This document shows, one piece after another, positions 7,716 through 46,449 of a stretch of DNA of 64,000 bases. How positions within the stretch are numbered: position 1 is the first letter of the stretch; each line of letters starts with the position of its first letter. The stretch comes from Trichosphaerium sp. ATCC 40318 (lineage: Eukaryota; Protista; Tubulinea). The stretch covers positions 186,001-250,000 of the forward strand of contig JALMLS010000385.1 in the NCBI GenBank assembly GCA_038496445.1, in the 5' to 3' direction. Position numbers and translations under genes: made by a program. The notes beneath the pieces are model-generated. The model saw only the letters and a program-made list of their open reading frames with translations. It searched no databases and had not been told where the DNA came from.

Positions 7716-8287
7716 AAAGTCTTGTAGACGTTAGAAATAAAAAACTCCCCGAGCACTTCTTTGGGTTTAGTTACCACTACGCGTACTCCAGCTAATAGCT
7801 GCCAACTTGTTTTTTTTGGAACTGTCTTTTTTGTCTTGAAAGGCTCTTACAAGAGCAGAGTAACCTTGATTTCGCGTAGCGGGAGTGTACATAAGTTATT
7901 CAACACCTAAAAAAATACTGCTACGCGTTAAAAACCAACGAATCGGTTTTTGTACAATTTACGCGTTATAACTGCAGATCAATTTACGTTGCAAGGTTGC
8001 GTTATACATGTGTTAACTACACGTCTCACCATTTGTTTTCTGAACTTTGTTTCGCTTGAGCTGTTTGGTTTTCTTTGTAGTTTAAAAAGGACTCCTGCGG
8101 GATTCTATTCGATATCTACGTGTTTCACCAAAGCCCTTGATTTCTAATTTAGTCCAAGCTTTCTAGAAGTTTTTACCCCGTTTCTACTTTCGTAAGAGCA
8201 GCAAATGAGGTAAAAACAATTCAGTTTACTGTATTATCTTGTGCCTTTACGTATCACTGCCATTAATCTTTCAAAAAACCCCAAAAC

Positions 8288-9650
8288 ATGTTTAGTGGCA
8301 TCTCTGTAGACGACTACATGCGCTGTGTAGCTGTGCGAAAGGATTTATTGCGTGCTCAGTCTAAAACAATTGATTGGACGCAATTCGACACTTTTCTAGC
8401 CTGGTTTTGTGCACAGAATTATACCTTTCCCGTAGCAGAGAATCATCTCATTCTTTACCACGATAAATTGAAACTGAACGATTACATGCCCACGACCGTT
8501 TATTCGATATTCAATCAGATTGGGGACTGTTTTACACTACAAGGCATGATAAAACAACAATGGATAAGAGAATTCCCCGTTTTGGAGCGTTTATTGTCTA
8601 GAGACGTTGAATGCCACAAACCTGAAAAGGTACGAAACAATCTAGGGCTACTGTACGACTTTATACCCTATTTAGGCAACTGGTTTCACAAAGAACAATT
8701 GCATCGCCTTTTTTAACAATGTAAACCACGGAGGTGATGGCAAGATACTTCAGTATAAAGTAGCGCTTGTTTTAGGCAACTTTGGTGGGTTGCGAGTAGT
8801 CGAGATGAAAAACCTTTGTTTCGAGCATGTAAAACTCGAAAATCATCCGGTTCATGGAGTACACTACAAGGTTTGTTTGTTTGCTGGGCGTTTTTCTAAT
8901 ATTGTTTGTAGATTCATGTGCTGAACCGGAAATACGGCTCATACGATTTCTTTGTCATCCCAGAAAGCGTCTCTCCTTGTTCTGGCTTTCAACTCTTGTA
9001 TTTTTATGTAAATTCATACTTCACTCCTGAAACACGTACTGGACCATTCTTCAGGCGTGTTGTTGGCGATAAATGCACTAAACAGCCTGTTGGGATCAAA
9101 ACTCTACAACAGTTCCCTACTATGATTGCTATGCACCTAGGGTTGCCTAACCCGGAGTCATATACAGGACGGTCCTTCCGTACTACACGAGCTACATTAT
9201 TAGAGTATGGGATGTGGGAATCAACTCAAGAAGCAATCACACAATACTTGACTAAAAAATCATCTATTAACGCTAGAATGCAACAAACTTTTACTGCCTC
9301 GGTACCTTTTTTTCGCTTCTTGACTTTTGTTGTTTATTGCTTTTATTATAGGAGACAATAGCACCTAGTGTTCCTCCTGGATTTATTTATGACCAAAGAT
9401 CTGGAAACTATATTCCAAGAGCTCCTTTACCTAATCTTATGTTAGCTAAACCATCAGCGCGAACAGCAGAAAGGGTATGTTTAGCAATACTGTATTTTCT
9501 TAAAATATTCTGTTTTTCAACGTTTGATGACATTCCATGCTTATGTTTTTTCTTCTATAGACTACCGCGTTTCAACCGTATCAAAACAATAACAAAAAGC
9601 GTAAAAAGATAAAGTGGCATAACATTGAAGCAGCGAACTTTAAAAAATAA
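8288..9650 (+). mobile_element. Intron-containing tyrosine recombinase gene (Crypton-like, possibly domesticated or degenerate), 5 exons
   Basis: Spliced product has box I LGNFGGLRVVEMKNLCFEHV, a middle region TGPFFRR..CTKQPVGIKTL..IAMHLGLPNPESYTG, box II variant YTGRSFRTTRATLL, GMWES...ITQY, and a C-terminal basic NLS KKRKKIK. Confidence 0.78.
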
Positions 9651-9883
9651 AAAAGAACCACCAGTCAACACATGTGTTGAAATACTGGAGCCAAGCCTGT
9701 AATTAAGAGCTTCAGTGTATACCCAATAAAAATGTGGCATATTTTCTACAACCAAGCTTTATGGAATTCTTTTTTAGTTAAAATGGCGAAGCGTGTGTAG
9801 GGTCTGTGCATACATTCGTTGCGAGAAGTTGTTAAGTGGAAAAGCAAAAACTGTCTTATTCATCAACGCTCGCAGTACCAGCG

Positions 9884-12186
9884 ATGAAGTACGCTTTTAT
9901 AGGATTGTGTGTCTTGTATTTGGCTGCAGCAAGCAAACCAAACGTACAACAACACGTTTTAAAAAACTTTGTGTTTATTTAATTTTAGATCTTGTACATT
10001 GTCGTAGATGACTTGAGACCTCAAATTACGGCGTATGATATCAATGCGCCAATGTATACACCCAATTTAGACCAGGTACGAGTTTTTTGTATCGCACGTG
10101 ATTATAGTGCGTAGGAAACTCACTAGCGCGAATTGGATGACAACGAATTTAACCGTTTTTAGTTCGCAAAGAAGAGTTTGGTGTTCAACCGCGCTTACTG
10201 CCAACAAGTACGCCACAACAACCCAGTCTATCGCTCAAAGTAGTCATTTCACTTATTGTATTTCTTGAGGCTGTATGTTCGCCCAGTAGAAACTCGTTTA
10301 TGACTGGTACAACTTTTTTGACATGTACCACGTGCTTGAAGAGCTTACTTTTGTGAAAAGGTCGGCGTCCTGATACAACCAAAGTATGGAACTTTCTCAC
10401 TGATTTTCGGAAAACAAATAAAGATTGGGTTGCTTTCCCGCAGTATTTCAAAGAGCATGGATATGAAACAACCGGTATGGGCAAACTGTATCACCCAGGT
10501 ATGCGTTTAACTAAGAGTAGTAGTTTTTCTTGTTATTTACTCATTGTTTTCTGTTTGAACAGGTCATCCACCAAAGGATGACGAACCTTACTCCTGGTCA
10601 CAAGATTACCCATATTTCGAACCTAATGGTCAAGTGGGAGGCTGTGCAAACGTTCCAGAAAAAGGTAGCTCACACGTTTGGAAAGAGTTTTGATTAATTT
10701 TGTAGGTGTCCATAATATCTCTTGTTATTGTGAAGGTGTAAGCTGTGTTGATCAACAACTTGCGGATTTGGCTGTAAAACGAATAGACGAAATGCTTGAA
10801 CAACCAAAACCTTGGTTTGTTGGTGTAGGCTTCCACAGACCCCATGTTGATTGGGAGGCTCCAAAAGTACATTTTCTAGTTTATAGAACCCTTACTCATT
10901 CTTTAGTCATCTTACGACATGTACCCAAATGTGTCTGCTATTCCTATTGCCTTGAATAAACTTGCACCGAAGGGTATGCCTCCAATGGCATTCTATAGTT
11001 GGGTGCTTCAAACATCAAAGCTTAGATCTACGTTTTCGTATTTCGGTAAGAACTTTGATGTATTCTTATGTAATTAAGCATTTTCGTTTTAGGGAGTCCT
11101 CAAATTCTTCCTGACAAACCACTTCCTGATGCATTGGTACGTAACTTGAGGCGAGGATATTTTGCAAGTGTTCATTATATCGATCAACGCATTGGTGAAG
11201 TTCTAAAGAAGCTTAATGACAGCAGGTAATTTCGAAAAATACTCATGATTCTTTTAATGTTAATTTTTACACAGTGCAGCTAATAATACAATTGTGATTT
11301 TCCACGGCGACCATGGATGGCAGTTAGGTAAGTAATATCTTTTTTGTATTCCAGTAGGACGTGTTCATTAATTTTAATGACAGGAGAACATGGTGGAATA
11401 TTTGGAAAACAAACAAACTTTGAAACAGGTGTTCGTGTTCCTTTGATGATTCATGTCCCTTGGATACAACAATCTCATGGTGTCAAAACACAAGCTCTTG
11501 TAGAGCTTGTAGATGTATATCAAACTGTGGCCGAGCTTGCAGGTCTTCCAGAACCACAAGGACTAGAAGGAACAAGTATGGCTCCTTTATTCAAAGACCC
11601 CACAAGTTCGGTAAACAATCTTTTTTGCTTTCCTTTACCTTATTTCAGCTTTAACTATTATTATAGATCAAAGACTATGCGTTTTCTCAATATCCACGAT
11701 GCCCATGTCCCAAAGGTATTTGTGATAATAATACACCACAATGGGCAGATCCTTGCACTGAGCATAAAGTACGGAAAGTAACAGTTGTATTAAAACTAAC
11801 TTCTCAAAGGCATCAAACTTCACTTACATGGGTTACACTGTTCGTAGTGATCGATGGAGATTTACAGAGTGGCGCAAATGGATTGGTGATACACTCAAAG
11901 CTGATTGGACAGGTACAAGTTCATTCACGAACAAAGAATTAACTTTTCTCTTTTTTAAAAATAGAATCTGGACTTGTTGGTATGGAGCTGTACGACCATA
12001 AAGGTACTTGCCATATCCTTGAGTTTATGATTTTACTAATATGTGATATCTTTAGGAGATCCAGGAAACAACTACGATATGTGGGAGAATGTTAATGTGG
12101 CAAAGGTCGATTTGTATCAAGATGTTGTTTCTCAACTGAAAAAAGTTCTAAAATCTCAGTTTGACCGCACTCGCTCTGAACAATAA
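9884..12186 (+). CDS. Secreted formylglycine-dependent S1 sulfatase, iduronate-2-sulfatase-like (copy A)
   Basis: Spliced: MKYAFIGLCVLYLAAASKPNILYIVVDDLRP...[25 protein letters not shown]...GKLYHPG...VGFHRPH...GDHGWQLGEHG; CxPxR motif intact. Confidence 0.93.
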
Positions 12187-12326
12187 ACAACTAAAATCGA
12201 ACTCTTGCGTTGTTGAATCCGAAGCAGCTCTTAACAATAAACAACAGTTTCCATTTGTAAAAACCTTAACTACCCTTTTTGACCATTTTTGACATTTTAG
12301 GTACGTTACACTAGAAGCTCTGTAAG

Positions 12327-13682
12327 ATGAAGGTACGTCCACGTGTATACTACTCAAAGCGACTAACTATCCCTAGAAATCAGTAACGTTGGCTTTAATT
12401 GGTATACTGGCAACGTGTTTTGTAATACGTGCAAGGTACGAACAGTTGAGCGAAAAGAACAACGAAAAAGAGTTAAAAAACAAAATTAAAGTTCACCTAC
12501 ATTTTCCTTGTGATCCAAAAACTTGAGTACAAAACCAAGTCTCACCCATTGTATCTAGTTCAGCATGTTTGAATCTTGTAACTGATTGTGGAGCGAAAGC
12601 CGATGGCCGTACAGATAGCTCAAATGCATTCGCCGTATGTCAAGAAAAGCTTAGAACGAGTGGTGGTTGTGTTGACATTCCTCCTGGAAGAATTCTGTGT
12701 ACAAACGTTCCTTTGGATGTTTCGCATATTGAATGGATACCAGACGCTGATACGGTATTTGCACCACCTTTGGATATCTCTGTGGCGAAAGCCACATTTG
12801 TTTTGGGGTCAATGACTTCTTTTGTTAAAAACGTGACTTTTAGTGCGAAGTTTCCTGGAAGATTCAGTTTTGACCTTTCCAACAACGTGATCGCTCCTTG
12901 GAATGTTGAAGCGTTTGCATTGTACGGTATTGATGGGTTTTTATTGGCGAATATGCACATTGCAATGGCACCAAATGCGACTGTTCAAAAGAATGGCCTT
13001 GGTTTTGCTCATAAAAATGTTGGTGGTGTAATTTATGACGCACGAAACGGTCACGTGGCAAATATCACATCCGAAGGTCACATATTCGGATACGGAACTG
13101 TTCAAATACAATCAGGGCAGAATATCTTGTTCGAGAATATTGACGGTGAAGGTGAGTTTAGGAGAAAGTTGCTTTTAGATATCAAGCATTTTCTATTCGG
13201 ATTTATGGCTAACTTATTGGTTAGGCGGTGTACCACTTAGACTTGAAACTGGAGCTGGAAACCAAGACGGATATGTTGACGGCATTGTAGGTAATAATAT
13301 TATTGGAAGGAACTGTCATGCAGGTATAATGACAGAGCCTCACACTCAAAAGAATGGAAAGTTTACAGTTACAAATGTAAAGACTTTTGGATGTTGGATT
13401 GGAGCTCAACTCAATGGTGGCTACTCTCAACATGGCAAAACACCAGGACACTTCAGCAACGACTCATCAGTGTATGGAGTGATATCTACATACGGATTAC
13501 AGGGACAAGCGGACCCTTTACACGAAGAACCATCTTGTTGTCCGTGTGGTACTGAAAACTCAAAGTTGAATTACCTTGTCGATATCAAAGGTATTCAGAG
13601 TTTAGGATTTCCTCCTCCATCAGACAGAGCCAAATGCGCTTATTGGACGAAACTACCAGCACCACCAAAGTGCCCGTACTAG
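12327..13682 (+). CDS. Secreted beta-helix glycoside hydrolase, GH82 iota-carrageenase-like (copy A)
   Basis: Spliced MK|KSVTLALIGILATCFVIRA signal; Pectate_lyase_3-like start NLVTDCGAKADGRTDSS; core GYGTVQIQSGQNILFENIDGEGGVPLRLETG...EPHTQKNGKFTVTNV matches the recalled GH82 pattern GYGxIQ..NILF.N..EGG..LRxETx..PH..KNG. Confidence 0.8.
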
Positions 13683-13912
13683 ACGCTTCAATGAGATGTT
13701 TAAATCCCACAATAAAGAATATTGTGCTCTTCTTCTTGTTCTCCTAGGTTCGTGCAAGTAAGCGTATAACCTTCAGAGCACAAAACTTAAACTGCAACAT
13801 GTTGATTGAAATCTGATTGAAATACTCAGTTAAGTTGGTTAGTTAAGTTAACTTGATAATCATTTCTTAAAACCTCAACAGCATCAACCACAGCTCTCAA
13901 ATAACATTTATC

Positions 13913-15984
13913 ATGTCTAGACAAAGACGTAGACGTAATAAAAGACAGGGTACAACAGCTAATAGAGAACAATCTATCTTGAGCGAAACTAACGTTGATT
14001 ATAGGAAGAGATAGTGATAGAAACTACAAGAACTTGATCGCATACATGACCAATATTGCCAACACTGAATATGTAGTAAGTGTTGCTACGGCTATGAGAC
14101 TCCCGAAGAAAGATTTGGTGATGGGTATAGCGAACCACGAATCAGCGAGTACGTCTTTCTTTGCAAAACACGTTTCGCCATAAAATCAATCTTCTGCAAA
14201 ATCAAAATCAATCAATTCTCCTGCTGACTTTTTTATTCTTAGAGCATATTTTAAAGATGACATTGCCGGAGATAAAAAGGGAAATTATTAAACTGGGATA
14301 CACTCCTCAGCAATCTATGAAACCAGGGCTTACTCTGGAGTTATTGATATGTATTCAAACTAAATCTCTAGGTACGTATCACAATTGCAACATATAATAC
14401 TTTCCTTTGATTCTTCAGTCGACTCACAACTTGCTATAGCTACCCCGATCATTAACACGGAGCGTATGGAGATGGGAAAGTTTTGGGAGCAATCAAAAGC
14501 TACAAGGAGACCCGGTAGACGGTCAAAATCAATGGCGCAAGATGATGAATTGTACAAACGGTTTTTCAAGTTTCTTGATACCATGCCAATGCCTTACATG
14601 AAGGCTTTTGATTTTCATAAAGAACCCATGAAGGAGGGCGTTCATGAGCCCGGTAAACACATACAGTGTTTGGCTCTTACACCTAAGCTTGATTGTATCA
14701 AGAACCCAACTTCGCTGCAAGTAGTAACAGTAGTGACTGCGTGTGCAAATGTAGTAGATAATGTCGCCAAAGGCAAACACGTGTGCGTACAATGTCAAGT
14801 TTTTTTTTTCAATCAACGACTTATATTCTATCAAGGAAAGCTCTTGTCACTTATATGCTTGCACAAAAAACAAGGAAGTTCATTACTGGCTGCATTGTAA
14901 CCAATAACAAGATAATGTTCTCCAAGTTTTTGTGGAACGGGCATGATAAGAAGGGCAAAGAACCTTATGAGGTTAGTATCTCGGAGAGCGTTCCTTTTAC
15001 CGGAACATCAGATGAGGGATCAAGACAATTAAGGAACTTTCTTTATTGTGATCCTGCAGCTCTTGGTTGGATTTATCCAACCTTTGATATTAATAACGAG
15101 ATTACAACACCAAAGGAGTTCCTCGAAAAGGGTAAACGCTCTGATGTTTACCTTCAAGTACTTCAAAAACCTGAAGAAATTGGTGTGTTGAAGGTATTCA
15201 AAGAGAAATTCAAGGACACTGCTGTTCTTGAGCATGAAGTTCTTGAAGCGATGGCAACAGCAGAGGTTAAAGGGGTGCCCAAGTTGGTATGTTAAGCAAA
15301 TATTCTTGTTTTATTTGTATTGCATCACGTGTTTAACTTTCTCTTAGATTCAAGCTGGTACAACTAAAGAGGATTTGCCTTACCAAATCACCTTGCCTGT
15401 ATGTAATAAGATAGAAACATCCAAGGAGTGCCCTTCTATGGTAGAGTTTATAAAACTATTGCAAAAAGTTCACGAATGTGGCTATATTCACAGGTACTTA
15501 CAACTATTTTTTCCCATTTCATGTTGTTCTGACACATGTCTTTAGAGATATAAGTACCGATAATATCATGACTCATCAAGGAGAAGCCCAGTTAATAGGC
15601 TTTGGATCAGCAATAAAATGCTCCCCTGAGGAACCAGTGAAGCAATCCGGAACACTTTTGTTTGCTTCAACTGATATCATCGAATCGTACATTAAAAAGA
15701 AAAAGATCGTGTACTCTTATGCACATGATTTGATATCTCTTGTTCGCGTTTGGATGTACCTAGACTGTGGTTCAATGGCAGATTTCATTTTCGTGTACCA
15801 CCATCAAACTGATTGGACAGCATCATCTATTTCTGAGCAAGCAACTTTTCAAGGCTTTATGGACTCGTGGTCTACTTTAAGCAAGCTACCTAAATACGCT
15901 AGAGCTTTGAAGTTGGCAGAAGCAACCGATTACGAAGGTTTAAAGGAGTACTTTGAAATCATGAACCCACGTATATGCTTATAA
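13913..15984 (+). CDS. Crinkler/CR-effector-like protein: SAP-like motif, degenerate REase-like domain, FunK1-like kinase domain
   Basis: Spliced model has LKMTLPEIKREIIKLGY (SAP-like), LAQKTRKFITGCIVTNNKIMF (CR-REase-like strand), then kinase motifs LEKGKRSDVY, VLKVF, EHEVLEAM, GVPKL, GYIHRDISTDNIM, LIGFGSA (DFG to GFG), SGTLLFAS and HDLISL. Confidence 0.72.
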
Positions 15985-16220
15985 CTGAGAAGTACTTGAA
16001 GAAGTAAACATGAAAAAGCTGTTAAGATTTACCAAATAAATTCCTTTTTTTTTAAAGTAGCTATTGTCCACTGGCATTAAAATACAAAAGGGGTAAAATA
16101 ATACTAAATAAGTTACATTATGATTAATGGCATGTGAAAGTGAATCGATGTGATCACATGATACGTTAATGACTACATTAAGTAATGATTTTATTTTTTG
16201 ATTGATGCTTTCACTCCACT

Positions 16221-17575
16221 CTAGTACGGGCACTTAGGCGGAGCTGGGTACCTTTTCCAATAAGCGCATTTGGTTCTATCTGATGGAGGAGGAAATCCTA
16301 AACTCTGAATACCTTTGATATCGACAAGGTAATTCAACTTTGAGTTTTCAGTACCACATGGACAACAAGATGGTTCTTCGTGTAAAGCATCCGCTTGTCC
16401 GTGAACTCCGTATGTTGATATCACTCCATACACCAACGAGTCATTGCTGAAATGTCCTGGTGTTTTGCCATGTTGAGAGTAGCCACCATTGAGTTGAGCT
16501 CCAATCCAACATCCAAAAGTCTTTACATTTGTAACTGTAAACTTTCCATTCTTTTGAGTGTGAGGCTCTGTCATTATACCTGCATGACAGTTCCTTCCAA
16601 TAATATTATTACCTATTATGCCGTCAACATATCCGTCTTGGTTTCCAGCTCCAGTTTCAAGTCTAAGTGGTACACCGCCTAACCAATAAGTTAGCGATAA
16701 ATTTAAAATAGAAAATGCTTGATTTCTAAAAGCAGCTCTTTCTACTGAACTCACCTTCGCCGTCTATATTCTCGAAAAAGATATTCTGGCCAGATTGTAT
16801 TTGAACAGTTCCGTATCCCCATATGTGACCTTCGGATGTGACATTCGCCACGTGACCGTTTCGCGCATCATAAATAACACCACCAACATTTTTATGAGCA
16901 AAACCAAGGCCATTCTTTTGAACAGTCGCATTTGGTGCCATTGCAATGTGCATATTCGCCAATAAAAACCCATCAATACCGTACAGGGCAAACGCTTCAA
17001 CATTCCAAGGAGCGATCATGTTGTGGGAAAGGTCAAAACTGAATCTTCCAGGAAACTTCGCACTAAAAGTCACGTTTTTAACAAAAGAAGTCATTGACCC
17101 CAAAACAAACGTGGCTTCCGCCACAGCAATATCCAAAGGTGGTGCAAATACCGTATCAGCGTCTGGTATCCATTCAATATGCGAAACATCCAAAGGAACG
17201 TTTGTACACAGAATTCTTCCAGGAGGAATGTCAACACAACCACCACTCGTTCTAAGCTTTTCTTGACATACGGCGAATGCATTCGAGCTATCAGTACGGC
17301 CATCGGCTTTCGCTCCACAATCAGTTACAAGGTTCAAACATGCTGAACTAGATACAATGGGTGAGACTTGGTTTTGTACTCAGTTTTTTGTATCACAAGG
17401 AAAATGTAGGTGAACTTTAATTTGTTTTTTAACTCTTTTTCGTTGTTCTTTTCGCTCAACTGTTCTTACCTTGCATTCATTACAAAACATACCACCAGCA
17501 CCAAAAATATAGCGACTTTGGTTGATTTCTAATGCCTGTATCAGTGCTTTTATTATGCACGTGACTTACCTTCAT
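16221..17575 (-). CDS. GH82 iota-carrageenase-like glycoside hydrolase (copy B)
   Basis: Reverse-complement paralog of 12327-13682. Mature domain nearly identical; signal peptide diverged (MKKSTKVAIFLVLVVCFVMNA). Confidence 0.8.
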
Positions 17576-17747
17576 CTGATGTTTAGCAGTCAACACGTGG
17601 AAAAGTCCTAAAGTGTCAAAAAAGGTCAACTTTTTGTACATTCGTTATTCACCAATGGTCTTTCACGTGTTTTTTTTGAAAATGAATTAGAACACTTTTT
17701 ATCAAGCTTCAGTATGATTTGATAACGCAAGAGTTCGATTTAGTTGT

Positions 17748-20086
17748 TTATTGTTCAGAGCGAGTGCGGTCAAACTGAGATTTTAGAACTTTTTTCAGTT
17801 GAGAAACAACATCTTGATACAAATCGACCTTTGCCACATTAACATTCTCCCACATGTCGTAGTTGTTTCCTGGATCTCCTACAGATATCACATGTGAGTA
17901 AAACCATAAACTCAAGGACATGGCAAGTACCTTTATGGTCGTACAGCTCCATACCAACAAGTCCAGATTCTATTAAAAAGAGAAAAGTTAATTCTTTGTT
18001 CGTGAATGAACTTGTACCTGTCCAATCAGCTTTGAGTGTATCACCAATCCATTTGCGCCACTCTGTGAATCTCCATCGATCACTACGAACAGTGTAACCC
18101 ATATAAGTGAAGTTTGATGCCTTTAATACTATGTAAGTGTATTCTACCTATTTTGCTTTCCGTACTTTATTCTCAGTACAAGGATTTGCCCATTGTGGTG
18201 TGTTATTATCGCAAATACCTTTGGGACAAGGGCATCGTGGATATTGAGAAAATGCGTAGTCTTTGATCTGCCAAAAGGTCAAAAAACAGGCAAAGATTGA
18301 AGTAAGGAAAACTGATAAAAAAGCAGTACCGAACTGGTGGGGTCTTTGAATAGAGGAGCCATACTTGTTCCTTCTAATCCTTGCGGTTCTGGAAGACCTG
18401 CAAGCTCGGCCACAGTCTGATATACATCTACAAGCTCTACAAGAGCTTGTGTTTTGACACCATGAGATTGTTGTATCCAAGGGACATGAATCATCAAAGG
18501 AACACGAACACCTGTTTCAAAGTTTGTTTGTTTTCCAAATATTCCACCATGTTCTCCTTCACATTAAAATTAATGAACACGTCCTACTGGAATACAAAAA
18601 AGATAGAACTTACCTAACTGCCATCCATGGTCGCCAAAGAATATCACAATTGTATTATTAGCTGCACTGTGTAAAAGTTAACAATGAAAGAAGATTGGTG
18701 CTATTCAATTTTACCTGCTGTCATTAAGCTTCTTTAGAACTTCACCAATGCGTTGGTCAACATAATGGACGCTAGCAAAATATCCTCGCCTTAGATTGCG
18801 TACCAAGTCATCAGGAAGTGGTTTGTCAGGAAGAATTTGAGGACTCCCTAAATCAGAAATTTGTGTATTATGTTCCTGATAAATAACTTACCAAAGTATG
18901 AAAACGTAGATCTAAGCTGTTTTGCTTGCATTCTCCAACTGTAGAATGCCATTGGAGGCATGTCTTTTGGAGCGATTTTATTCAAGGCTACAGGAATAGC
19001 AGATACGTTTGGGTACATGTCGTAAGATGACTAAAAATGGTAAGGGCACAGTACGATGATTTACAAAGAGTACTTTTGGAGCTTCCCAATCAATGTGAGG
19101 TCTATGGAAACCAACACCAACAAACCAAGGTTTTGGTTGTTCAACCATTTCACCTATTCGTTTTACAGCTAAATCCGCAAGTTGTTGATCAACACAGCTT
19201 ACACCTTCACAATAACAAGAAAAATTGTGGACACCTAAAAGAAACAAATCAAAACCAACTAAAACGATTTTGTTTTACCATGCTCTGGAACATTTGCGCA
19301 GCCTCCCACTTGACCGTTAGGATCGAAATATGCGTAATTTTGCGACCAGGAGTAAGGTTCGTCATCCTTTGGTGGATGACCTGTTTACAAGAGTGAATAT
19401 TAGACACAAAAGAACAACACTCCTCAGTTCTTAAAAACATACCTGGGTGATACAGCTTGCCCATACCGGTTGTTTCATATCCATGCTCTTTAAAATACTG
19501 AGGGAAAGCAACCCAGCTTTTATTCGCTTTCCGAAAATCAGTGAGAAAGTTCCACACTTTGGTTGTATCAGGACGCCGACCTTTTCACAAAAGTAAGCTC
19601 TTCAAGCACGTGGTATATGTCAAAAAGATTGTACCAGTCATAAACGAGTTTCTACTGGGCGAACATACAGCCTCAAGAAATACAATAAGTGAAATGACTA
19701 CTTTGAGTGATAAACTGGGTTGTTGTGGCGTACTTGTTGGCAGTAAGCGCGGTTGAACACCAAACTCTTCTTTGCGAACTAAAAACGGTTAAAGTCGCTC
19801 ATCCAAATCGAATTTGCTCGGTTTAATTGTTGAGCAGCTAGTAGCTCCACGCGCTATTAATCACGTGCGATAATTCAAAATATATTTCTACCTGGTCTAA
19901 ATTGGGTGTATACATTGGCGCATTGATGTCATACGCCGTTATTTGAGGTCTCAAGTCATCTACGACAATAAACAAGACCTAAAATTAAATAAACGCAAAG
20001 TTTTTTAGAACGTGTTGTTGTACGTTTGGTTTGCTTGCTGCTGCAGCCAAATACAGGATACAAAATCCTATAAAAGCGTACTTCAT
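17748..20086 (-). CDS. Secreted S1 sulfatase, iduronate-2-sulfatase-like (copy B)
   Basis: Reverse-complement paralog of 9884-12186; CSPSR, GKLYHPG, GFHRPH and GDHG motifs intact. Confidence 0.93.
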
Positions 20087-20868
20087 CGCTAGTACTACGT
20101 GCGTTGATGAATAAGACAGGTTTTTCTTTTCCACTTAACTGTTTCTTCTCGAACGTGTTATTGACAGAAAGAACTCTAGACAAGTTTTACTAACTCGCCA
20201 CAACAAGAGATTACCTCAACCTTGGTGCAAGGCACAGTACCAACACTTTTCGCTCTATATTACTTGTAGTTGTAATGAATGCAGTCTATAGGAGTACAAG
20301 AATGTTGCCTTGTATGGCATGTTACTAGGAACAAATACAATGTGAAAATTAACACTGACACATTGCGTGTCAAACAATCGCAATGTCTTCACTGAAAATC
20401 TCAAGCTCTGCTAAAAATTCTAGTCGAAAAACCATCTACTGTTTACACTGTTATACGCCTTTTCTCCTTCGGGCGCTAGACTGCGCGTTTGAGACCTGGT
20501 GATTGTATTTTGACCAATTGATGCTTTTCTACTCAAAGACGATTGTAATTATCACTATTCGTGCATAAACCTCGCGTTCTCTTCCTTTACCTTTCAAGTT
20601 TATTTGTCAGCGTTTAGTACTTAAGTGACTGCGCATAGCGCACAAGCAACTCATGCGCGTGCTGTCGCCCTTCGTTTGGCAGGTACAACTAAGTTAAGCC
20701 AAACTAAATCGCCTTAAATTCTTCCCGCCTAATTTTTGCCCATTGTACAATTGAAACATAGTACTGTGGATATAATTTGAATAAGTTCGAGGGATTTTAT
20801 ACGATTTCTACGAAGAGGTTTAAAAACATTTTTGTTTCAACAATTATTCTAATTGCGCGCAAGGTACA

Positions 20869-23800
20869 ATGGAGAAGAGCGACGACGAAGATTCTAGACA
20901 CCAACTTGATGGAAGTGAATCTGATAATGAACAACAAGAGGATGTAGAGATGCTAGACGGTATATTATCGTCTATACTACGTATAATTTAACTAAATCTA
21001 CGAAAGCTGAGGAGAGCAACGAAGAACAACCTGACAGTAACGAACAAGAGCAAAATGAGCCTGACTCATCTAAACCACGTCTAATGATTACAAAACTGGT
21101 CTTAGAAAACTTTAAATCATACGGTGGCGAAAAACAAGTGGGACCTTTCCATCATCAGTTCTCTGCTATAGTAGGTCCAAACGGTAGCGGAAAATCAAAT
21201 GTCATCGACGCTATTTTGTTTGTTTTTGGCAAAAGGTACAAAACCGTCTGTTGCAATCAAAAACAATTCTACGTGACTTTTAACCGCGTTTGTACGTACT
21301 TTAGATTGACATTTTCAATAGGGCAAAAAAATTGCGCCAACAGAGATTGGGCGAGCTCTTACATAACTCAGACAGCTATAAAGGTGTTAAAGAAGGCAAA
21401 GTAACCGTTCATTTCCAACAAATCATCGTCAGGGTAAAGTTTAATCATCTTTTGGAAAAAAATTTCAAAAAAAAAATAGTCTCCAAGACGGAAGCTTCTT
21501 AGGCGCCTTACTGACAGTTTTTCTTTTTTTAGGATGATCCTGAAAAGTATGAAGTTGTTCCAGATTCAGAGTTTTCTGTTACAAGAGTTGCTTTACGTAA
21601 TAATACGTCAAAGTACATGGTCAATAAAAAGTATGTGGAAGAAAGTTTTTTTTTTTGAATTATCAAAAGCACGTGTTTGGATTGTTGTACTTATGTATTT
21701 TTTTCGTAGGGTTGTTAAAGGGAAACAAGTCGTAGCACTTCTAAAGAGTCATGGCATTGATTTGGACCATAATAGATTTTTAATCCTTCAAGGCAAGAAA
21801 TTGATGAAAAACATTCTGGAGTTTGATAGATCACTGTGTTGATTGAAAGTTCCTTATATATGATTTGTAGGTGAAGTAGAGCAAATAGCAATGATGAAAC
21901 CAAAGGCTCAAGGATCCAATGATACAGGACTATTGGAGTACTTAGAGGTATATAATGCTGAGAATCTTGATTGATCGATTTGCGTTAAAAAATTTCTTTT
22001 TAAATCGCGTTTTTACTTTCGTCTTTGTTAAGTACATGCAAGCCCGTATAGCTCAATTGGCAGAGCAGTACCTTCCTAAGGTATTGGTTGCAGGTTCAAT
22101 CCCTGCTACGGGCTTCATATCTTCTTTTGCGCTATGCTGTAGAGTCGGTTCAACTCTACCTGATGGCGTGTTTTTTTTATTCAGTTTGCATACTTTTTTT
22201 GTTTCTTTGAACGTGACAGTTTTTTAACCTTTTACTATTAGGATATTATTGGTACCAACGTTTATGTTGAAGAGATTGAAACATTGGGTGATAAAGTAGA
22301 AAATCTTAATGAGAAGAGGCAAGAGCAGCTACAAAAAGTTCAAGCTGCAGAAAAGTCAAAAGGACAGTTAGAAGCTGCCAAAACCGAGGCTGAGGAATAT
22401 GTTAATATCGAGATTCAAGTTGTCGAAAAACGCGGGATTCTTACTCAAATGGCAAGGCAACGGTAAGTTTAAGAGTGTTAAACATAGTATAGCTTTCTTC
22501 TTCAGTGCTTTATGAGTACAGTCGCTGTTTTTTTTTTTTTTTGCATGTTTTTTGCTTATTATTTTGCTAGCGTTACTACTGCATCTACGAATATTCTAGA
22601 ACGTCAGCAAGAGTTAAAAAATCAACTCGCAGAAGCTGTAAAGGAATACGAGGAGGCAAGGGAAAAAACTGTTGACTTCGAGACTCAACACAAAGCAGAG
22701 AAGAAGTCTTTGGATGTGCGTTTTGTTGTTCCCGTGATATATTTTCTTGTGCAGCTTTGTTGCGTGTCACGTGACTCCACATGTTTTTGTTTGTGCAATA
22801 ATTGTTGCTCCTTTCTATTGCAACTATTTGTGGGTACTTTATGCTGATAAGTTGTTTTTTCCTTAGAAAATGAAACGTGCTTTGGAAAAAGTGAAAAAGG
22901 AGTATTCTTCTAAAGAAAATCTCGAAATTAAGCTCAACGAGGATATCAAAAACGCTAAGAATAAGCTCAAGAGATTGAGGAAGAACATCGAAAAGGTATG
23001 TACTGTTGACTAATAATGCACATGCTCAGTTTTAAAGCTCATAGTAAAACAAACCTTTTTTAATTTTTTTCACTTTATAGGAAGATAAAACTGCTAGAGA
23101 GAAAGCAGCTTCGCTTGTTCTATATAAAGATGAACTAACCAGGTTGAAACAAGAAGTAGTTGAATTGACTGATAAAGTAAAGAAGGAAGAGAAGAAATAC
23201 GAAGCAATTCGTGAGAAGATAAAAGGTAAGGAGAAACAAACTCACAAAAATATTTTGCTTTTGGTCTTCCTTGTCTCCCATACACGTCATGCTTTTGCGA
23301 TTATGTATGTTAAAATAATGACTTACACTATGTAGGCAAGACAGCACCATTACAAGAAGAACTTGAAGAGAAGCAAAAGGATTTGATGCCTTGGAATAAA
23401 AAAATTGATGAAGCTGTTGCCAAAAGAGATTTTGCTGATTCTCAGGTTAATCTTTTAAAAGAACAAACAGAAGAAGCTGAGAGAAAGTACCAAGAAGCTG
23501 TAAATGAGTTGTCAGAGATGGAGAATACCATCAAAGTCAAGGCACGTACCACAAAACACTCGGCGAGATTTTTTCTTTGCAGTTTTCGTTTGCTACTTTC
23601 AATGAACCTCTTGTTTGCTTGAATGATTAGTGACTTACAAAATCTCTAGACTCGAGAAGGAAAAGAGAGCAGTGAACACTTGGAGAGTCTTAATACTGAC
23701 TTGGCAAAGACCAAGAAAGAGTATAAAGCGAAAAAGCTTGAAGAAAGAGAAATAAGCCAAGTCATCAGGTAATGTTGACCTTTTTACATTTTCTTTACTC

Positions 23801-28505: not shown

Positions 28506-29307
28506 GTGTTTTGCACGTTCAATGTTAAGAGCTATGTTTGTTATCTAATTATACAGACGTAAATAATGAATCAGATGAATTCTGGCTTACTAATAATTTG
28601 TACGCCGTAAAAAGACGGTATTTACCGGTAAAACCAAACGGGAATTTAATGAGATTTCCGTTGTTTTTTCCTAAATTTTTTTGTTGATAATATTCGAAAT
28701 TTTCAGCGGCATATGAGGAGATAGTCAGCGAGGCTATAAACAAGCACTTCTACATAAAGATAATGCATTGATACGGTGGTTTCTACAGAAAAAATCAGAA
28801 TGAAGTGAGCATCTCTGGTACGTAGTAGTGAAGCGTTCTCTTAGCTTTTTATTCTTTTGCGTTGTTTTTCTACTGATGTTTTCTTTCAAGGCTATGACAA
28901 GGAGCTTCTAGCTTGAAACGTTGGTGAAGGGTATAGAGTTCCATACATCACCTACTTCCAGATACGACTACTGGTGAGTAGTTGTTTGAATTGTTCTTTA
29001 CTGACTTTTTTTTGCTTTAGATGTAATGTGGTGTTTGTTTTTAAAGAATGACAACAGTTCGCATGTTAGCTTGTTATAATTCAAACTTTTATTTGTGTTG
29101 CATAACCTACTATACCGCATGTAGCAACTTAAGCATAGCGTTTGGCCTTTGTCTTGTGTAATGATAACCCACTTAAAGAACTCCTATGCTGACAAATACG
29201 TTGTTAAGTTTTTCTTTAAGTCAGACGTCTTTTCAGAAAATCGGTTTTTTTTGGTGCATGTGGCAAAGCGATTTCTATTTACTTCAAAACAAATCAAAAC
29301 GCCTAAG

Positions 29308-30465
29308 ATGGCAACGAAACGCGCGGTACATAATAGTGCGACAATCGTAGCGCCTCCTAGCACCAAAAAGCAGATAGCAGCGTTAGAACCGAATGATCGC
29401 TCATTGTTGTACCTGCCTGTAGAGCTACAGCTAGACGTAATGGATTTAGACCATGATCTATACGTAAAATGGCCTCTACTATCGAAACGCGCTGCAACTC
29501 TGACCAGGTTTGACGCGGAGCTGAATAAACACGGAAAATGGGTAAAAAAAGAAAAAAAAGTCAAATGCGATGGAGATTTCAATTTTAGACCAGGATTGCA
29601 TACACTAGCTATAAAAAATTGGAAACACGGACAAGTTCATGGTGTTTTTAAGGAATTTTACGATAATGGCTGTACTAAAAAGGAAGAAAATTATGAGAAT
29701 GGTGTGATTCACGGAGATTGGAAGGTATATCATTATAATGGGTCTATACATAAGCTATGTCATTATATCAATGGTGAACGAGAAGGAGAGTATAAGAGTT
29801 GGTATGAGGATGATAGAGGAGATGAAGGAAAAGAAGGAGACGGTCAATTATTTGAAACTTGGTTTTATGTTAATGGATTGCTTGAAGGAGAATATAATAA
29901 ATATCACGTGAATAATATCCTCCTTGAAAATTGTTTTTATGTCGATAATTTGAAAGAAGGTGAAGATATCACGTATTATAGAAACGGCTCAAAAAAAACA
30001 AAGGCTTTTTATTCAAAAGGTAACAAGGAGGGTTATTTTAAAGAGTTTCGTGGAATTGATGGTAAACTGGTTGTGGATTGTTTTTATTCAAATGATAAAA
30101 AAGAAGGAGAGTTTAAGAGTTTTTATTGGAATGGTAAACTCAGAGAACATTGTTCTTATCTCAATGGTCTTATTCAAGGTGATTATAAACAATGGTATGA
30201 TAATGGACAGTTATTTGAGGAGTGTTGTTATTTTAATGGTAAGAGACATGGAGAGTTTAAGTGGTGGCTTAAGAGTGGTGAACTGAAGAAGAAGTGTAAT
30301 TACTCAATGGGTAAACTAGAAGGAGAGTTTAAAAAGTGGTATGATAATGGTCAGCTATGGGAAAAGAGTCAATATGTTGATGGTAAACTATACGGTGACT
30401 ATGAGAAATGGTCTGTGGATGGTGAATTACAAGAGCGTAAGACTATTCATAGATACCACATGTAA
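29308..30465 (+). CDS. F-box-like plus MORN-variant (YwqK-like) repeat protein, intronless
   Basis: LLYLPVELQLDVM F-box-like start, then about a dozen repeats of type G.xxEGEYKxWYxNGQL. Confidence 0.85.
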   Translation: MATKRAVHNSATIVAPPSTKKQIAALEPNDRSLLYLPVELQLDVMDLDHDLYVKWPLLSKRAATLTRFDAELNKHGKWVKKEKKVKCDGDFNFRPGLHTLAIKNWKHGQVHGVFKEFYDNGCTKKEENYENGVIHGDWKVYHYNGSIHKLCHYINGEREGEYKSWYEDDRGDEGKEGDGQLFETWFYVNGLLEGEYNKYHVNNILLENCFYVDNLKEGEDITYYRNGSKKTKAFYSKGNKEGYFKEFRGIDGKLVVDCFYSNDKKEGEFKSFYWNGKLREHCSYLNGLIQGDYKQWYDNGQLFEECCYFNGKRHGEFKWWLKSGELKKKCNYSMGKLEGEFKKWYDNGQLWEKSQYVDGKLYGDYEKWSVDGELQERKTIHRYHM

Positions 30466-31363: not shown

Positions 31364-32774
31364 TCAGAAAACACAAGCAGATTTACGTAATGACTGATTA
31401 CTAGAGTTCTCTAATTTACCATTTCCTTGTCCAGCCATTCTAACAGCAGCATACATAAAACCAGCAAGTGCAGTATGAAGAACTTGTTGAATAAAAATAT
31501 ATTGACTGATTGATTGAACCATAGCAGAATGTCTTTGTTCTCTCAAAGAGTAAACAATCGTGTACGTATCAATATTCTCAAAATCAGGGCATGTCATAGC
31601 ATCTACGCTTTGAAGCAGACCAGCTCGATCTAGATTATCAACACTTTCACTAAGAGCAGAATCACTGTAGTTCAAGGTAGATCGAGATCGTAAAAGAATT
31701 TCTTCTCTTTTCGCTTTAAGCTTCTCTATACCTAGCGCTACAGTGACAAAAGTACCAGCCCGTCCAACACCTGCAGAGCAGTGTACTACAGGCGGTCCTT
31801 CAAGTCCTTTAAAGATACCTTGTTCTCTGTAAATAGACATAAGGTTGTAGAGACTTAAGATTGATTTTGGACATTCTGGGACTCCACGATCAGGCCATCC
31901 CATGAAATGTAGTTGAGTCAACTCCTTCATTGCTCCTGTCTTTGTATGTACTATCTGGAACCTTCTTGATACGATTTCATCGACAGAATGCTGAGAACAA
32001 AGCGTAATCGATAAATCATCCCAAACGCATGTCATACCGATCTCTTGTGGCCAGTATACGTGTCCTTTGATTTTACCGCCTTCTTGTAGTTTTAGAAGCA
32101 TAACGATCACAGGAACGTTATTTTCCCATACCATACGCCAAAAGTCGCCGAATGTCGTTGGTAGAGGGCATTGGGTGACTATGAACGTGCTATGGGGCTT
32201 TTGGGTGTTATTGGGCGTAGGAATTGTACATCGGCTTGCGTTGATGTAATTGTTGTTTGAGAGCATCACACGGTTGTTTTGGTTCGGGAGGACGTCACAG
32301 TATCGGTTTTTGTAAAGATTCTCCGGTAATGCCGCTGTAGGGTATACTTTGCGTAGATCTGAGAATGTTCTCGGTTTTGGCGCGCGTTGTGCTTGTAACG
32401 TTTGATATTCTTGTTGTGCGTATCTTATACGCTCGTCTGATAATGGTGAGGCGTTCTAAAGAGCAATGAGTGATTTATACGTTTTGTTACGAAAAGGTAT
32501 TTAAAAGGTTCAGCGAAATGAAAGTATGGAGGTAAACCCACTATTCGCGCGTGTATTGAACACTACAAGAACGTTATGTTATTGTTTGATAGAAATGATA
32601 AGTAATTGGATTAAAAACGATACGTACCCCTTGAATTATAGGTGCTTGATTTGTTTGTGCTATTTTCTTTACTTTCATCATGCTGAGGTGCATACTTTGG
32701 GAGAATTTCTGTATTTGTAGAATTCTGGAACTTAAGAGTACCATTCAACGAAAATTACACTAACTTAACCTCAT
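31364..32774 (-). CDS. Classical (non-receptor) protein tyrosine phosphatase; 5' exons tentative
   Basis: KNRYCDVLP, YINAS, TQCPLPTTFGDFWRMVWE, WPDRGVP, HCSAGVGRAG and MVQSISQY motifs. Confidence 0.93.
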
Positions 32775-45051: not shown

Positions 45052-46449
45052 ATGGAAAACACAGAGCTGCGGGTGTTTTATGGTGCCTAGTAATTGGCTA
45101 TTACTGTGCTGCGCGCATAATATTGAAGAGAAATTCGAAGACTTCCAAACAGGTGATAACTGATTCGCAGGTAACGCTCTTTACCAAGCGGGTAAACTGA
45201 TGTTACAATATCTAAGCCAACTTTACAAGAAGATAACTCAGAACAACGCCAAAACACTAGGTAAAATGCCATTTTAACGTTTAGTAGCTGCGTGTCTAAA
45301 CAAAAAACCATTAGAAGATGAGATACATGCCTCACAATCGTATTCTTGCCATCTATTACACCTACCACTTGAGTTACAGTTTGATATTATCGATTTAGAC
45401 TCTAAACTGTACATAAAGTGGCCTCTCTTATGTAAGCAAGCAGCTGTGACAACAAGATTTGATTTTGAGTTAAACAAACATGGGAAATGGAATAAGATTG
45501 ATACTGAGAACTACCACAAGGATATATCCGAATTAGAATGTTTTAAGGAACACTCAGATATTACGGTAAATACATAAAACTCATTTAAATCCACTTTTAT
45601 TTAAACAGTTATTCACAGGTTACTGCTCAGTTTCAGCACGGATGTTATGATGGTGAGTACAAGAAATGGTATTGCGCTGGTTTCTTCTGTAAAGCAAGTC
45701 ATAATTGCCAAAGGCTCCACAGGTCAGACCACAAGCGCCTTCATATTTGGTATTCTCAATGCCTTAAGTCTCTTGATTGGTCTTATGATGAAAAACTATG
45801 GGAATATTATAAGGATGGACAATTAGAAGAGAAGAGGTACTATGTTAATGGTAAACTACAAGGTGAATTCAAAAGTTGGCACATCAATGATCAAGTAAGG
45901 GAGAAATGTTATTATATAAATGGTAAACGACAAGGTGAGTACAATATGTGGTATCTTGATGGTCAGTTGTCAATGCAGTGTTATTATAAGGATGGTAAAC
46001 TAAACGGCAAATACAGAAATTGGTATAAGAATGGACAACTGTACATAGAGAGCACTTACGTCAATCATAAACTTGAAGGAGATTTCATAGAGTGGCATAA
46101 CAACGGACAAATGAGAGAGAAGTATTGTTGCACCAATAATAGACGTGAAGGAGAGTATAGAAATTGGTATTACAATGGCCAATTAAGCAAGCAAGCTATT
46201 TATGTTAACAACAAAAAGAAAGGAGAAGAAAAAACCTGGTATGACAATGGTCAAATCAGAAGTATCCACCAAATTGGTAGGTTTGCTACAGAGTGCAAAG
46301 AATGGCAAAGAGGAGAATTAATTCACTACACCAACCATGTTGTGGGTCCTCGACTTGTTGTGCTTTTATGTGTGACTGTTTTTCCATCAGTTGTGATACT
46401 GATAATTGCAGTGTTATATGCTGGTTTTTATGGCAATGACCGATTATAA
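45052..46449 (+). CDS. F-box-like plus MORN-variant repeat protein with C-terminal transmembrane anchor; start uncertain
   Basis: LLHLPLELQFDIIDLDSKLYIKWPLLCKQAAVTTRFDFELNKHGKW is paralogous to the 29308 gene; MORN-variant repeats; tail LVVLLCVTVFPSVVILIIAVLYAGFYG. Confidence 0.78.

Follow-up and report, generated by a model that had tools for sequence, protein, structure and literature searches.

As far as the accessible parts of the literature go, the carrageenases that have been cloned and characterized are all bacterial, and eukaryotes are mentioned only in a few fungal genome papers that list glycoside hydrolase family 82 (GH82). The closest described enzymes to those treated here are the iota-carrageenases CgiA of Alteromonas fortis (CgiA_Af; PDB entries 1H80, 1KTW and 3LMW), CgiA1 of Zobellia galactanivorans and CgiA_Ce of Cellulophaga sp. 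QY3, which are secreted proteins with a right-handed β-helix fold. In Zobellia, sulfatases of the S1_7 subfamily are part of the carrageenan regulon, and one of them, CgsB1, desulfates alpha- to beta-carrabiose motifs (PMC5698469). Here we describe a comparable gene pair in the amoeba Trichosphaerium sp. ATCC 40318. It lies in a stretch of 64,000 nucleotides (assembly GCA_038496445.1, contig JALMLS010000385.1, positions 186,001 to 250,000 of the forward strand) that we call the window and whose numbering is used throughout. From the sequence alone, it had been proposed that a secreted S1 sulfatase and a secreted GH82-like β-helix hydrolase, linked and present twice between 9884 and 20086, constitute a module for carrageenan utilization (the original prediction).

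The predicted proteins resemble both parts of the bacterial systems. With the bacterial iota-carrageenases the β-helix protein shares the N-terminal cap motif, the Gly-Tyr-Gly, Gln, Arg, Glu and His residues at subsites −1/+1 and a probable secretion, and the model of its closest homologue, P0001, follows the same register of the right-handed β-helix. Unlike these enzymes, to which it is only 23–30% identical, it has no domain A lid, lacks part of the C-terminal elaboration, carries Gly in place of Asp247 as well as extra cysteines at both ends, and is encoded by an intron-containing gene. It is also like the short, uncharacterized ETG/ESG-type GH82-like proteins of marine bacteria (Pontiella sulfatireligans F21, Echinicola pacifica, Flammeovirga, Planctomycetota), which belong to the same length class, have no domain A, show the same Gly and often adjoin S1 sulfatases as the window protein does; the best match among them (L034_2) is 34% identical. 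However, the genes of these proteins are bacterial, intron-less and situated in polysaccharide utilization loci (PULs), whereas the window protein branches with eukaryotic sequences. The sulfatase displays the CxPxR motif and the DD metal site of S1_7 sulfatases such as human iduronate-2-sulfatase (IDS; 5FQL, 6IOZ) and Zobellia CgsB1 and CgsB2. The linkage of a GH82 depolymerase with an S1_7-type sulfatase recalls the bacterial carrageenan loci and regulon (Ficko-Blean et al. 2017, PMC5698469), but the amoebal pair consists of two genes only, genes for a transporter, a regulator, GH127/GH129 or the anhydrogalactose pathway being missing from its vicinity, and these two genes give separate monocistronic transcripts for which co-regulation was not observed.

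According to the Trichosphaerium genome paper, the strain stems from Sargassum seaweed, its genome has 37.69% GC (the window has ~38%) and the cultures were fed with bacteria only; the Trichosphaerium transcriptomes are single-cell libraries. The paper cites publications from the 1990s on seaweed digestion and the use of macroalgal carbohydrates by Trichosphaerium, an algae-eating amoeba. It does not mention carrageenase or GH82, and its main text contains no discussion of glycoside hydrolases or sulfatases. Its table of lateral gene transfers lists sulfatases, alginate lyases and several glycoside hydrolase families, with no entry for carrageenase or GH82.

Assignment of the β-helix protein to GH82

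In a phmmer search of the PDB, exon 3 of the β-helix gene matched the A. fortis iota-carrageenase (1H80/3LMW) with an E-value of 1e-7 over 194 residues, and exon 4 continued collinearly on the same structures (E 5e-3); iota-carrageenase is the best PDB sequence match of the protein. At full length it aligned with CgiA1-type orthologues of Cellulophaga and Zobellia (28% identity, E 7e-21 to 1e-18). Only 124 relatives were recovered when 1.84 billion cluster representatives were searched exhaustively, and a length-limited homology search with the 223-aa open reading frame (ORF) gave no match. PDB entries of family GH28 matched the N-terminal cap only (first ~50 residues, E 0.01–0.07), and a Pfam scan produced no GH28 match to the gene. 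Pfam, which holds no GH82 model, offered only PF12708, again on the cap and below threshold.

The fold was tested on the closest homologue, P0001 (46% identical), for which an AlphaFold2 (AF2) model was built from an 83-row alignment (pLDDT 94). Foldseek ranked GH82 structures first (E 6e-19 to 1H80, TM 0.8; next family 4e-7), and VIA gave a Z of 42.8 to 1H80 with a root-mean-square deviation of 2.1 Å over 328 residues, whereas the runners-up from other families (phage tail proteins, alginate epimerases and GH28) reached at most 28.8. Feature and shape searches of the ESM Atlas returned generic β-helix families only. No competing match came from GH28, GH55 or GH87. The sequence, the modelled fold of P0001 and the active-site residues discussed below bear out the GH82 identity proposed for the protein, and we regard its membership in this family as a solid prediction. 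Both the sulfatase and the β-helix protein start with a basic stretch that is followed by a hydrophobic one, as read by eye; such N-termini are typical of signal peptides and agree with the predicted secretion of both.

The motifs TVQ (Q204), LRLETG (E227 and G229) and EPH (H259), which had been noticed at the outset, are present, and the residues G199-Y200-G201, Q204, R225, E227 and H259 are all kept. In copy 1 the codons of Q204, E227, G229 and H259 lie on the plus strand at 13103-13105, 13245-13247, 13251-13253 and 13341-13343, respectively. In both copies E227, Q204 and H259 align with the proton donor E245, Gln222 and His281 of CgiA_Af, while G199, Y200 and R225 correspond to the strictly conserved G228, Y229 and R254 of CgiA_Ce at subsites −1 and +1. 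According to the Cellulophaga CgiA study, these positions are conserved and matter for function, and the Tyr and the Arg contact sulfates at subsites −1 and +1 (G4S and DA2S of iota-carrageenan; PMC3669377).

G229 occupies the position of the general-base Asp (D247 of CgiA_Af). The original prediction had pointed to this exchange; the Gly itself was confirmed, but it turned out to be nothing special. Of 125 labelled bacterial homologues, 82 have Gly at this position, 35 have Asp and 7 have His, and Gly also occurs in 68 of the 78 cluster representatives, so that the Asp marks the CgiA1/CgiA_Af subgroup and not the whole family. Gly is the common state of the family and neither a peculiarity nor a sign of inactivation. 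All six captured GH82-like proteins of P. sulfatireligans lack the Asp. Growth on iota-carrageenan is found in this species, which has GH82 genes, but not in a sister species that lacks them (PMC7356697); by this correlation, the Gly state appears compatible with carrageenase function. In strain F21 of this species we found at least six GH82-like genes (loci L028, L034, L035, L074 and L082), none of which encodes the general-base Asp. Several of them adjoin sulfatases, and one sulfatase in L035 is a strong match to that of the amoeba.

The window protein also lacks an insertion of ~50 residues that is found in the Cellulophaga and Zobellia CgiA1-type proteins. We take this insertion to be the domain A lid that confers processivity in the A. 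fortis iota-carrageenase. With no such lid, an open cleft and non-processive cutting would be expected.

The sulfatase and its pairing with GH82-like genes

Both copies of the sulfatase carry the metal-binding residues D27-D28 and the formylglycine motif C67-S-P-S-R71 (Cys codon of copy 1 at 10276-10278). The ORF of exon 11 matched PF16347 (SGSH_C) above the cut-off (E 1e-10), and PF00884 (Sulfatase) likewise matched there. In the PDB, human IDS and 6HHM scored equally for exon 5 and human IDS was the best match for exon 7, whereas for exon 11 other S1 structures and subfamilies scored above IDS. When the spliced sulfatase was compared with all ORFs of bacterial GH82 loci, ~68 sulfatase ORFs matched. 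Strong matches (E 1e-81 to 2e-39) were obtained with 15 sulfatase ORFs located within 8 kb of bacterial GH82-like genes, in the genera Aquimarina, Paraglaciecola, Pontiella, Polaribacter, Tamlana, Lutibacter and Wenyingzhuangia. A search profile derived for the most part from such bacterial neighbour sulfatases returned only bacterial sequences, with names including 'Endo-4S-kappa-carrageenan sulfatase, family S1-7' and 'iduronate-2-sulfatase'. The intact motifs, the IDS matches in the PDB and the S1-7-named relatives of the matching bacterial sulfatases are in keeping with the proposed IDS-related S1 sulfatase, and the gene can be firmly predicted to encode an intact S1 enzyme, probably of the IDS/S1_7-like type.

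Many marine bacteria that are not related to one another thus carry this sulfatase subtype next to GH82-like genes. The idea that bacteria pair this type of sulfatase with GH82-like genes is supported by the 15 strong matches within 8 kb. Since close bacterial relatives of the sulfatase adjoin GH82-like genes, the amoebal pair mirrors a recurrent bacterial association and may, by analogy, have a bacterial precedent. Co-transfer of both genes as one bacterial fragment was considered as well and is unsupported: for one member of the bacterial group that is sister to the eukaryotic GH82-like sequences (see below), none of the listed neighbours is a sulfatase, for the other no sulfatase matching the window protein was obtained, and the eukaryotic clade-mates have no sulfatase neighbour. 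The two genes also differ in intron number, with 14 in the sulfatase and 3 in the GH82-like gene.

Gene structure, inverted duplication and transcripts

As assembled, the two copies of the pair lie on two arms that form an inverted, tail-to-tail duplication: arm A on the plus strand (9824-13683) and arm B on the minus strand (16220-20146). A repeat search in the window resolved their match into 15 collinear inverted segments (I1-I15) with 84–99% complementarity, and the arms were also aligned globally. Gene models were built by hand from GT..AG sites and reading frames and moved to arm B by means of the global alignment. Sulfatase copy 1 (9884-12186, plus strand) has 15 exons and encodes 518 aa; copy 2 (17748-20086, minus strand, start at 20086) has 15 exons as well, encodes 519 aa with the CSPSR motif intact and is 94.6% identical to copy 1. 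Copy 1 of the GH82-like gene (12327-13682, plus strand; exons 12327-12332, 12377-12435, 12559-13151 and 13225-13682) and copy 2 (16221-17575, minus strand; exons 17575-17570, 17528-17470, 17347-16755 and 16678-16221) each encode 371 aa and are 92.7% identical. The sulfatase stop and the β-helix ATG on the same strand are 140 nt apart in copy 1 and 172 nt apart in copy 2. The linkage, common strand, duplication and spacing of ~140 bp described in the original prediction were therefore found again, the duplication being an inverted one.

Reading frames are intact in all four genes, and all 34 introns of the two copies have GT..AG borders. In the global alignment of the arms, the copies are 93.7% identical in their exons, 79.9% in their introns and 58% in intergenic and flanking sequence, the intergenic stretch being the least conserved part of the arms (46–53%). 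Between the copies, the sulfatase shows a dN/dS ratio of 0.12 and the mature part of the GH82-like protein one of 0.17, with dS values of 0.14–0.23. All four genes are under purifying selection; this and the graded divergence of exons, introns and flanks indicate that the copies are old and that all four genes have been kept by selection.

Transcript evidence was taken from the contigs of four public runs (X1-X4), which were aligned to positions 9800-13800. All 14 sulfatase introns appear as GT..AG joints exactly as modelled in contigs of three runs (X1-X3). These contigs delimit a sulfatase mRNA on the plus strand that extends from ~9865 to at least 12247 in the 3′ untranslated region; the furthest 3′ contig (record 16) stops at 12247, 80 nt before the ATG of the GH82-like gene. 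At the other end, position 9865 is preceded by a loose contig end, TATCAACGCAGAGTACGGG, which we take to be the tail of a template-switch cDNA oligonucleotide, and this would place the 5′ end of the mRNA ~19 nt before the ATG. Because the sulfatase mRNA ends before the ATG of the GH82-like gene and no contig of the latter was obtained, the two genes appear to be separate transcription units. Nor was any contig from copy 2 of the GH82-like gene found at 95% likeness in the four runs. A sulfatase contig of run X4 (11523-11563) departs from copy 1 at three sites; at two of them it agrees with copy 2 and at the third with neither copy, which points to a third allele or to a paralogue of the sulfatase that is expressed elsewhere in the genome. 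The presence of spliceosomal introns in both genes, which had been predicted, is accordingly RNA-confirmed for the sulfatase. The three introns of the β-helix gene have no RNA support; they are backed by the reading frame, by GT..AG borders in both copies and by the exon 3/4 junction, where GEG joined to GVPLRLETG fits the family consensus GxGGVxLRLETG with no gap. The first exon of this gene has only 6 nt (ATGAAG, followed by GT) and is the same in both copies.

Phylogeny of the GH82-like genes

Genomes of the GTDB were searched with a degenerate DNA motif spanning GYG..Q...F...GG..LR.E. More than 120 GH82-like loci were obtained, almost all from marine polysaccharide degraders (Flavobacteriaceae, Flammeovirga, Planctomycetota, Pontiella, Latescibacterota and others). 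Unrooted trees were calculated with FastTree and with quick and careful runs of IQ-TREE. Both window copies fall inside a clade of 12 members with ultrafast bootstrap (UFBoot)/SH-aLRT values of 100/99. The clade also comprises a protein from the transcriptome of the euglenid Ploeotia vitrea and one from a Picozoa single-cell assembly, two data sets that may contain prey contamination. Another member, P0004, lies on a 22.7-kb contig of a metagenome-assembled genome (MAG) among genes for SNARE, RNase III, FANCL and zinc-finger proteins. At locus L001 (GCA_977009605.1, contig CDRMYP010001668.1), an intron-less member of the clade is surrounded by SNARE, RNase III and FANCL genes on a eukaryotic MAG contig that is intron-poor and gene-dense with 55% GC; its organism may be no seaweed grazer. 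P0007 adjoins nucleotide-sugar transporter genes, and the remaining six proteins are located on short contigs with long non-coding flanks. The genomic context is eukaryotic for the window, P0004 and P0007.

The sister group of this eukaryote-type clade is bacterial (P0077 and a protein from an Acidimicrobiales MAG; support 99/99), and both groups together lie inside a large marine bacterial radiation. Nesting within marine bacteria, which had been named as a check, was thus recovered at the level of the radiation, but the amoebal genes do not nest directly among bacterial ones; they belong to a eukaryote-type clade with a bacterial sister. In the same way, the proposed acquisition from bacteria holds as to the ultimate origin of the gene, for which it is the most parsimonious account, but not as a lone transfer, given that the 100/99 clade includes sequences from eukaryotic contigs. 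Bacterial origin with subsequent residence and spread among eukaryotes, and not a recent private transfer, is the simplest reading. Patterns specific for the clade found no relative in GTDB genomes. Spread by viruses was examined as a further route, and neither the clade patterns nor the family motif gave a match in IMG/VR. As a separate observation, the metagenome contig of P0153/P0077 (JGI 3300048101) encodes a second β-helix protein of 930 aa in addition to three sulfotransferases, Wzz, a glycosyltransferase and a polysaccharide exporter.

Function of the gene pair

We consider it fairly probable that the pair digests a sulfated galactan of the iota-carrageenan type. From the likeness to characterized systems we infer the substrate, the cooperation of the enzymes, their inducibility and the destination of the proteins, and carrageenan use in particular would follow, by analogy, from family membership. 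Each arm would comprise two independently transcribed genes whose enzymes would be routed to the secretory or digestive-vacuole pathway. The downstream gene would encode a GH82 endo-hydrolase with a right-handed β-helix, in which the Glu would act as proton donor, the Gln and His would position the catalytic water, and the Tyr and Arg would bind sulfates at subsites −1/+1 as in characterized iota-carrageenases. The upstream gene would provide a formylglycine sulfatase of the IDS/S1_7 type, bacterial S1_7 members being known to desulfate carrageenan oligosaccharides. On red algae engulfed or grazed by the amoeba, the two enzymes together would cleave iota-type sulfated galactans and remove their sulfate groups. 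The GH82 gene would descend from bacteria via the clade common to several marine eukaryotes and would later have gained introns, extra cysteines and a eukaryotic signal peptide, before the pair was copied as one inverted unit whose copies were both retained by selection.

Several observations weigh against digestion of an iota-type galactan. The low identity to characterized iota-carrageenases goes along with a long branch, the structural match was obtained for P0001 and not for the window protein itself, and the general-base Asp is absent. Positions 12346-13800 are not covered by contigs of any of the four runs, although such contigs show presence and not absence. Co-expression, which had been set beforehand as a test, was not seen: the sulfatase mRNA is present and neither copy of the GH82-like gene is covered. 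The GH82-like gene is not detectably expressed in the sampled RNA, from cultures that were probably fed with bacteria only, and such feeding would explain the silence of a gene for an algal-wall enzyme. No neighbouring sulfatase was present at the eukaryotic clade-mate loci that were checked, and the clade-mates include data sets of pelagic protists and eukaryotic MAG contigs, whose organisms are unlikely to meet macroalgal carrageenan. Finally, the sister member P0077/P0153 is situated in a cluster for the synthesis of a sulfated exopolysaccharide and not in a degradation locus, which suggests that some GH82-like enzymes process the bacterium's own sulfated exopolysaccharide.

Alternatively, the GH82 hydrolase could act on another sulfated glycan, such as bacterial or microalgal exopolymers, marine gel particles or the amoeba's own surface glycans, with the IDS-like sulfatase serving as a general lysosomal enzyme and the pair digesting prey matrix. 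Such a substrate would suit a clade that holds a euglenid transcriptome, Picozoa and eukaryotic MAG contigs of 55–65% GC, none of them from known seaweed grazers. It would also suit the sister gene among sulfotransferases, Wzz, glycosyltransferases and a polysaccharide exporter, the transcription of the sulfatase without the hydrolase in bacteria-fed cultures and the low identity to characterized enzymes. However, the protein retains the Tyr and Arg known to bind the G4S and DA2S sulfates of iota-carrageenan, the top-scoring labelled bacterial homologue belongs to a species in which growth on iota-carrageenan goes along with the possession of GH82 genes, and the host is a documented algae-eating amoeba isolated from seaweed. 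We therefore judge a different glycan to be unlikely, though well worth keeping in mind. A functional link between the two genes could also be missing altogether, if unrelated genes for secreted enzymes had been copied together by the segmental inverted duplication. The separate transcripts, the poor conservation of the intergenic stretch, the eukaryotic GH82 homologues with no sulfatase neighbour and the intron density of 14 versus 3, which suggests different histories, would all be in line with fortuitous adjacency. It is nevertheless quite improbable in our view, as many unrelated marine bacteria have the same sulfatase subtype next to GH82-like genes, the characterized Zobellia carrageenan regulon includes S1_7 sulfatases (PMC5698469) and purifying selection acts on both genes of both copies. 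Least credible of all is an artefact, in which the genes would be bacterial contaminants or the palindrome would be false and due to the mis-assembly of two haplotypes. The X4 transcript contig, in which one of the three variant sites matches neither copy, does imply that further alleles or paralogues exist, but spliceosomal introns in both genes (14 of them RNA-verified) and eukaryotic flanking genes (tyrosine phosphatase, MORN-repeat proteins) speak against contamination, and a dS of 0.14–0.23 with 20% intron divergence is high for alleles. The arms are, moreover, separated by a unique 2.5-kb spacer.

Surroundings of the gene pair

The spacer (13684-16219) separates the two 3′ ends and lies outside the module; identity of the arms collapses just past the stop codons of the GH82-like genes. 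It contains a run of plus-strand ORFs at 14385-15984, of which the ORF at 15478-15981 gave weak, sub-threshold matches to Pkinase and Pkinase_fungal. This kinase-like gene at the centre of the palindrome may be degenerate or associated with a mobile element. Immediately before arm A, at 8267-9609, plus-strand ORFs follow one another in shifting frames; the two largest have no Pfam match, and the region may be a decayed gene or the remnant of a mobile element at the edge of the duplication. The original prediction had also named a nearby GH3 and GH9, which were not found among the larger flanking ORFs tested, short exons not having been scanned exhaustively. A tblastn comparison of all ORFs of the bacterial loci with the window revealed no further homologues of carbohydrate-active enzymes outside the two arms.

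Beyond arm B, at a distance of ~2 kb, there is a tRNA gene (22042-22114; Rfam RF00005, 68 bits), and an exon just upstream of it (21084-21401) codes for the N-terminal, Walker-A-containing part of an SMC/RecF-type ATPase. Further along the window we found ORFs for MORN-repeat variants (29149-30462 and 45946-46446, E 2e-22 and 8e-17) and an exon of a tyrosine phosphatase (31367-32269, E 2e-55), which confirm the nuclear eukaryotic context. The region 50200-53200 stands out with 45–46% GC, compared with ~37% around it, and a GC skew of +0.33. It harbours long ORFs of 947 aa (plus strand, no Pfam match) and 767 aa (minus strand) and looks like a compositionally odd repeat or a low-complexity gene.

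Implications

The locus is of interest because cloned carrageenases are otherwise bacterial. Its genes are candidates for the long-known digestion of seaweed by Trichosphaerium. A wider view, which we put forward tentatively and hold to be doubtful, is that GH82 has an unrecognized eukaryotic branch, which has become distributed over unrelated marine protists and which in a seaweed-eating amoeba was joined to an S1_7 sulfatase and duplicated, giving a small PUL-like cassette. On this view, the protist would depolymerize and desulfate carrageenan-type galactans without bacterial help, and the genes would be the first eukaryotic carrageenase genes, clustered convergently in a way that mirrors bacterial loci. 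The pairing of GH82 and S1_7 genes in a eukaryote can be seen as a minor case in which selection has rebuilt a gene neighbourhood known from bacteria, and the eukaryote-type GH82 clade raises the question which sulfated glycans marine protists digest.

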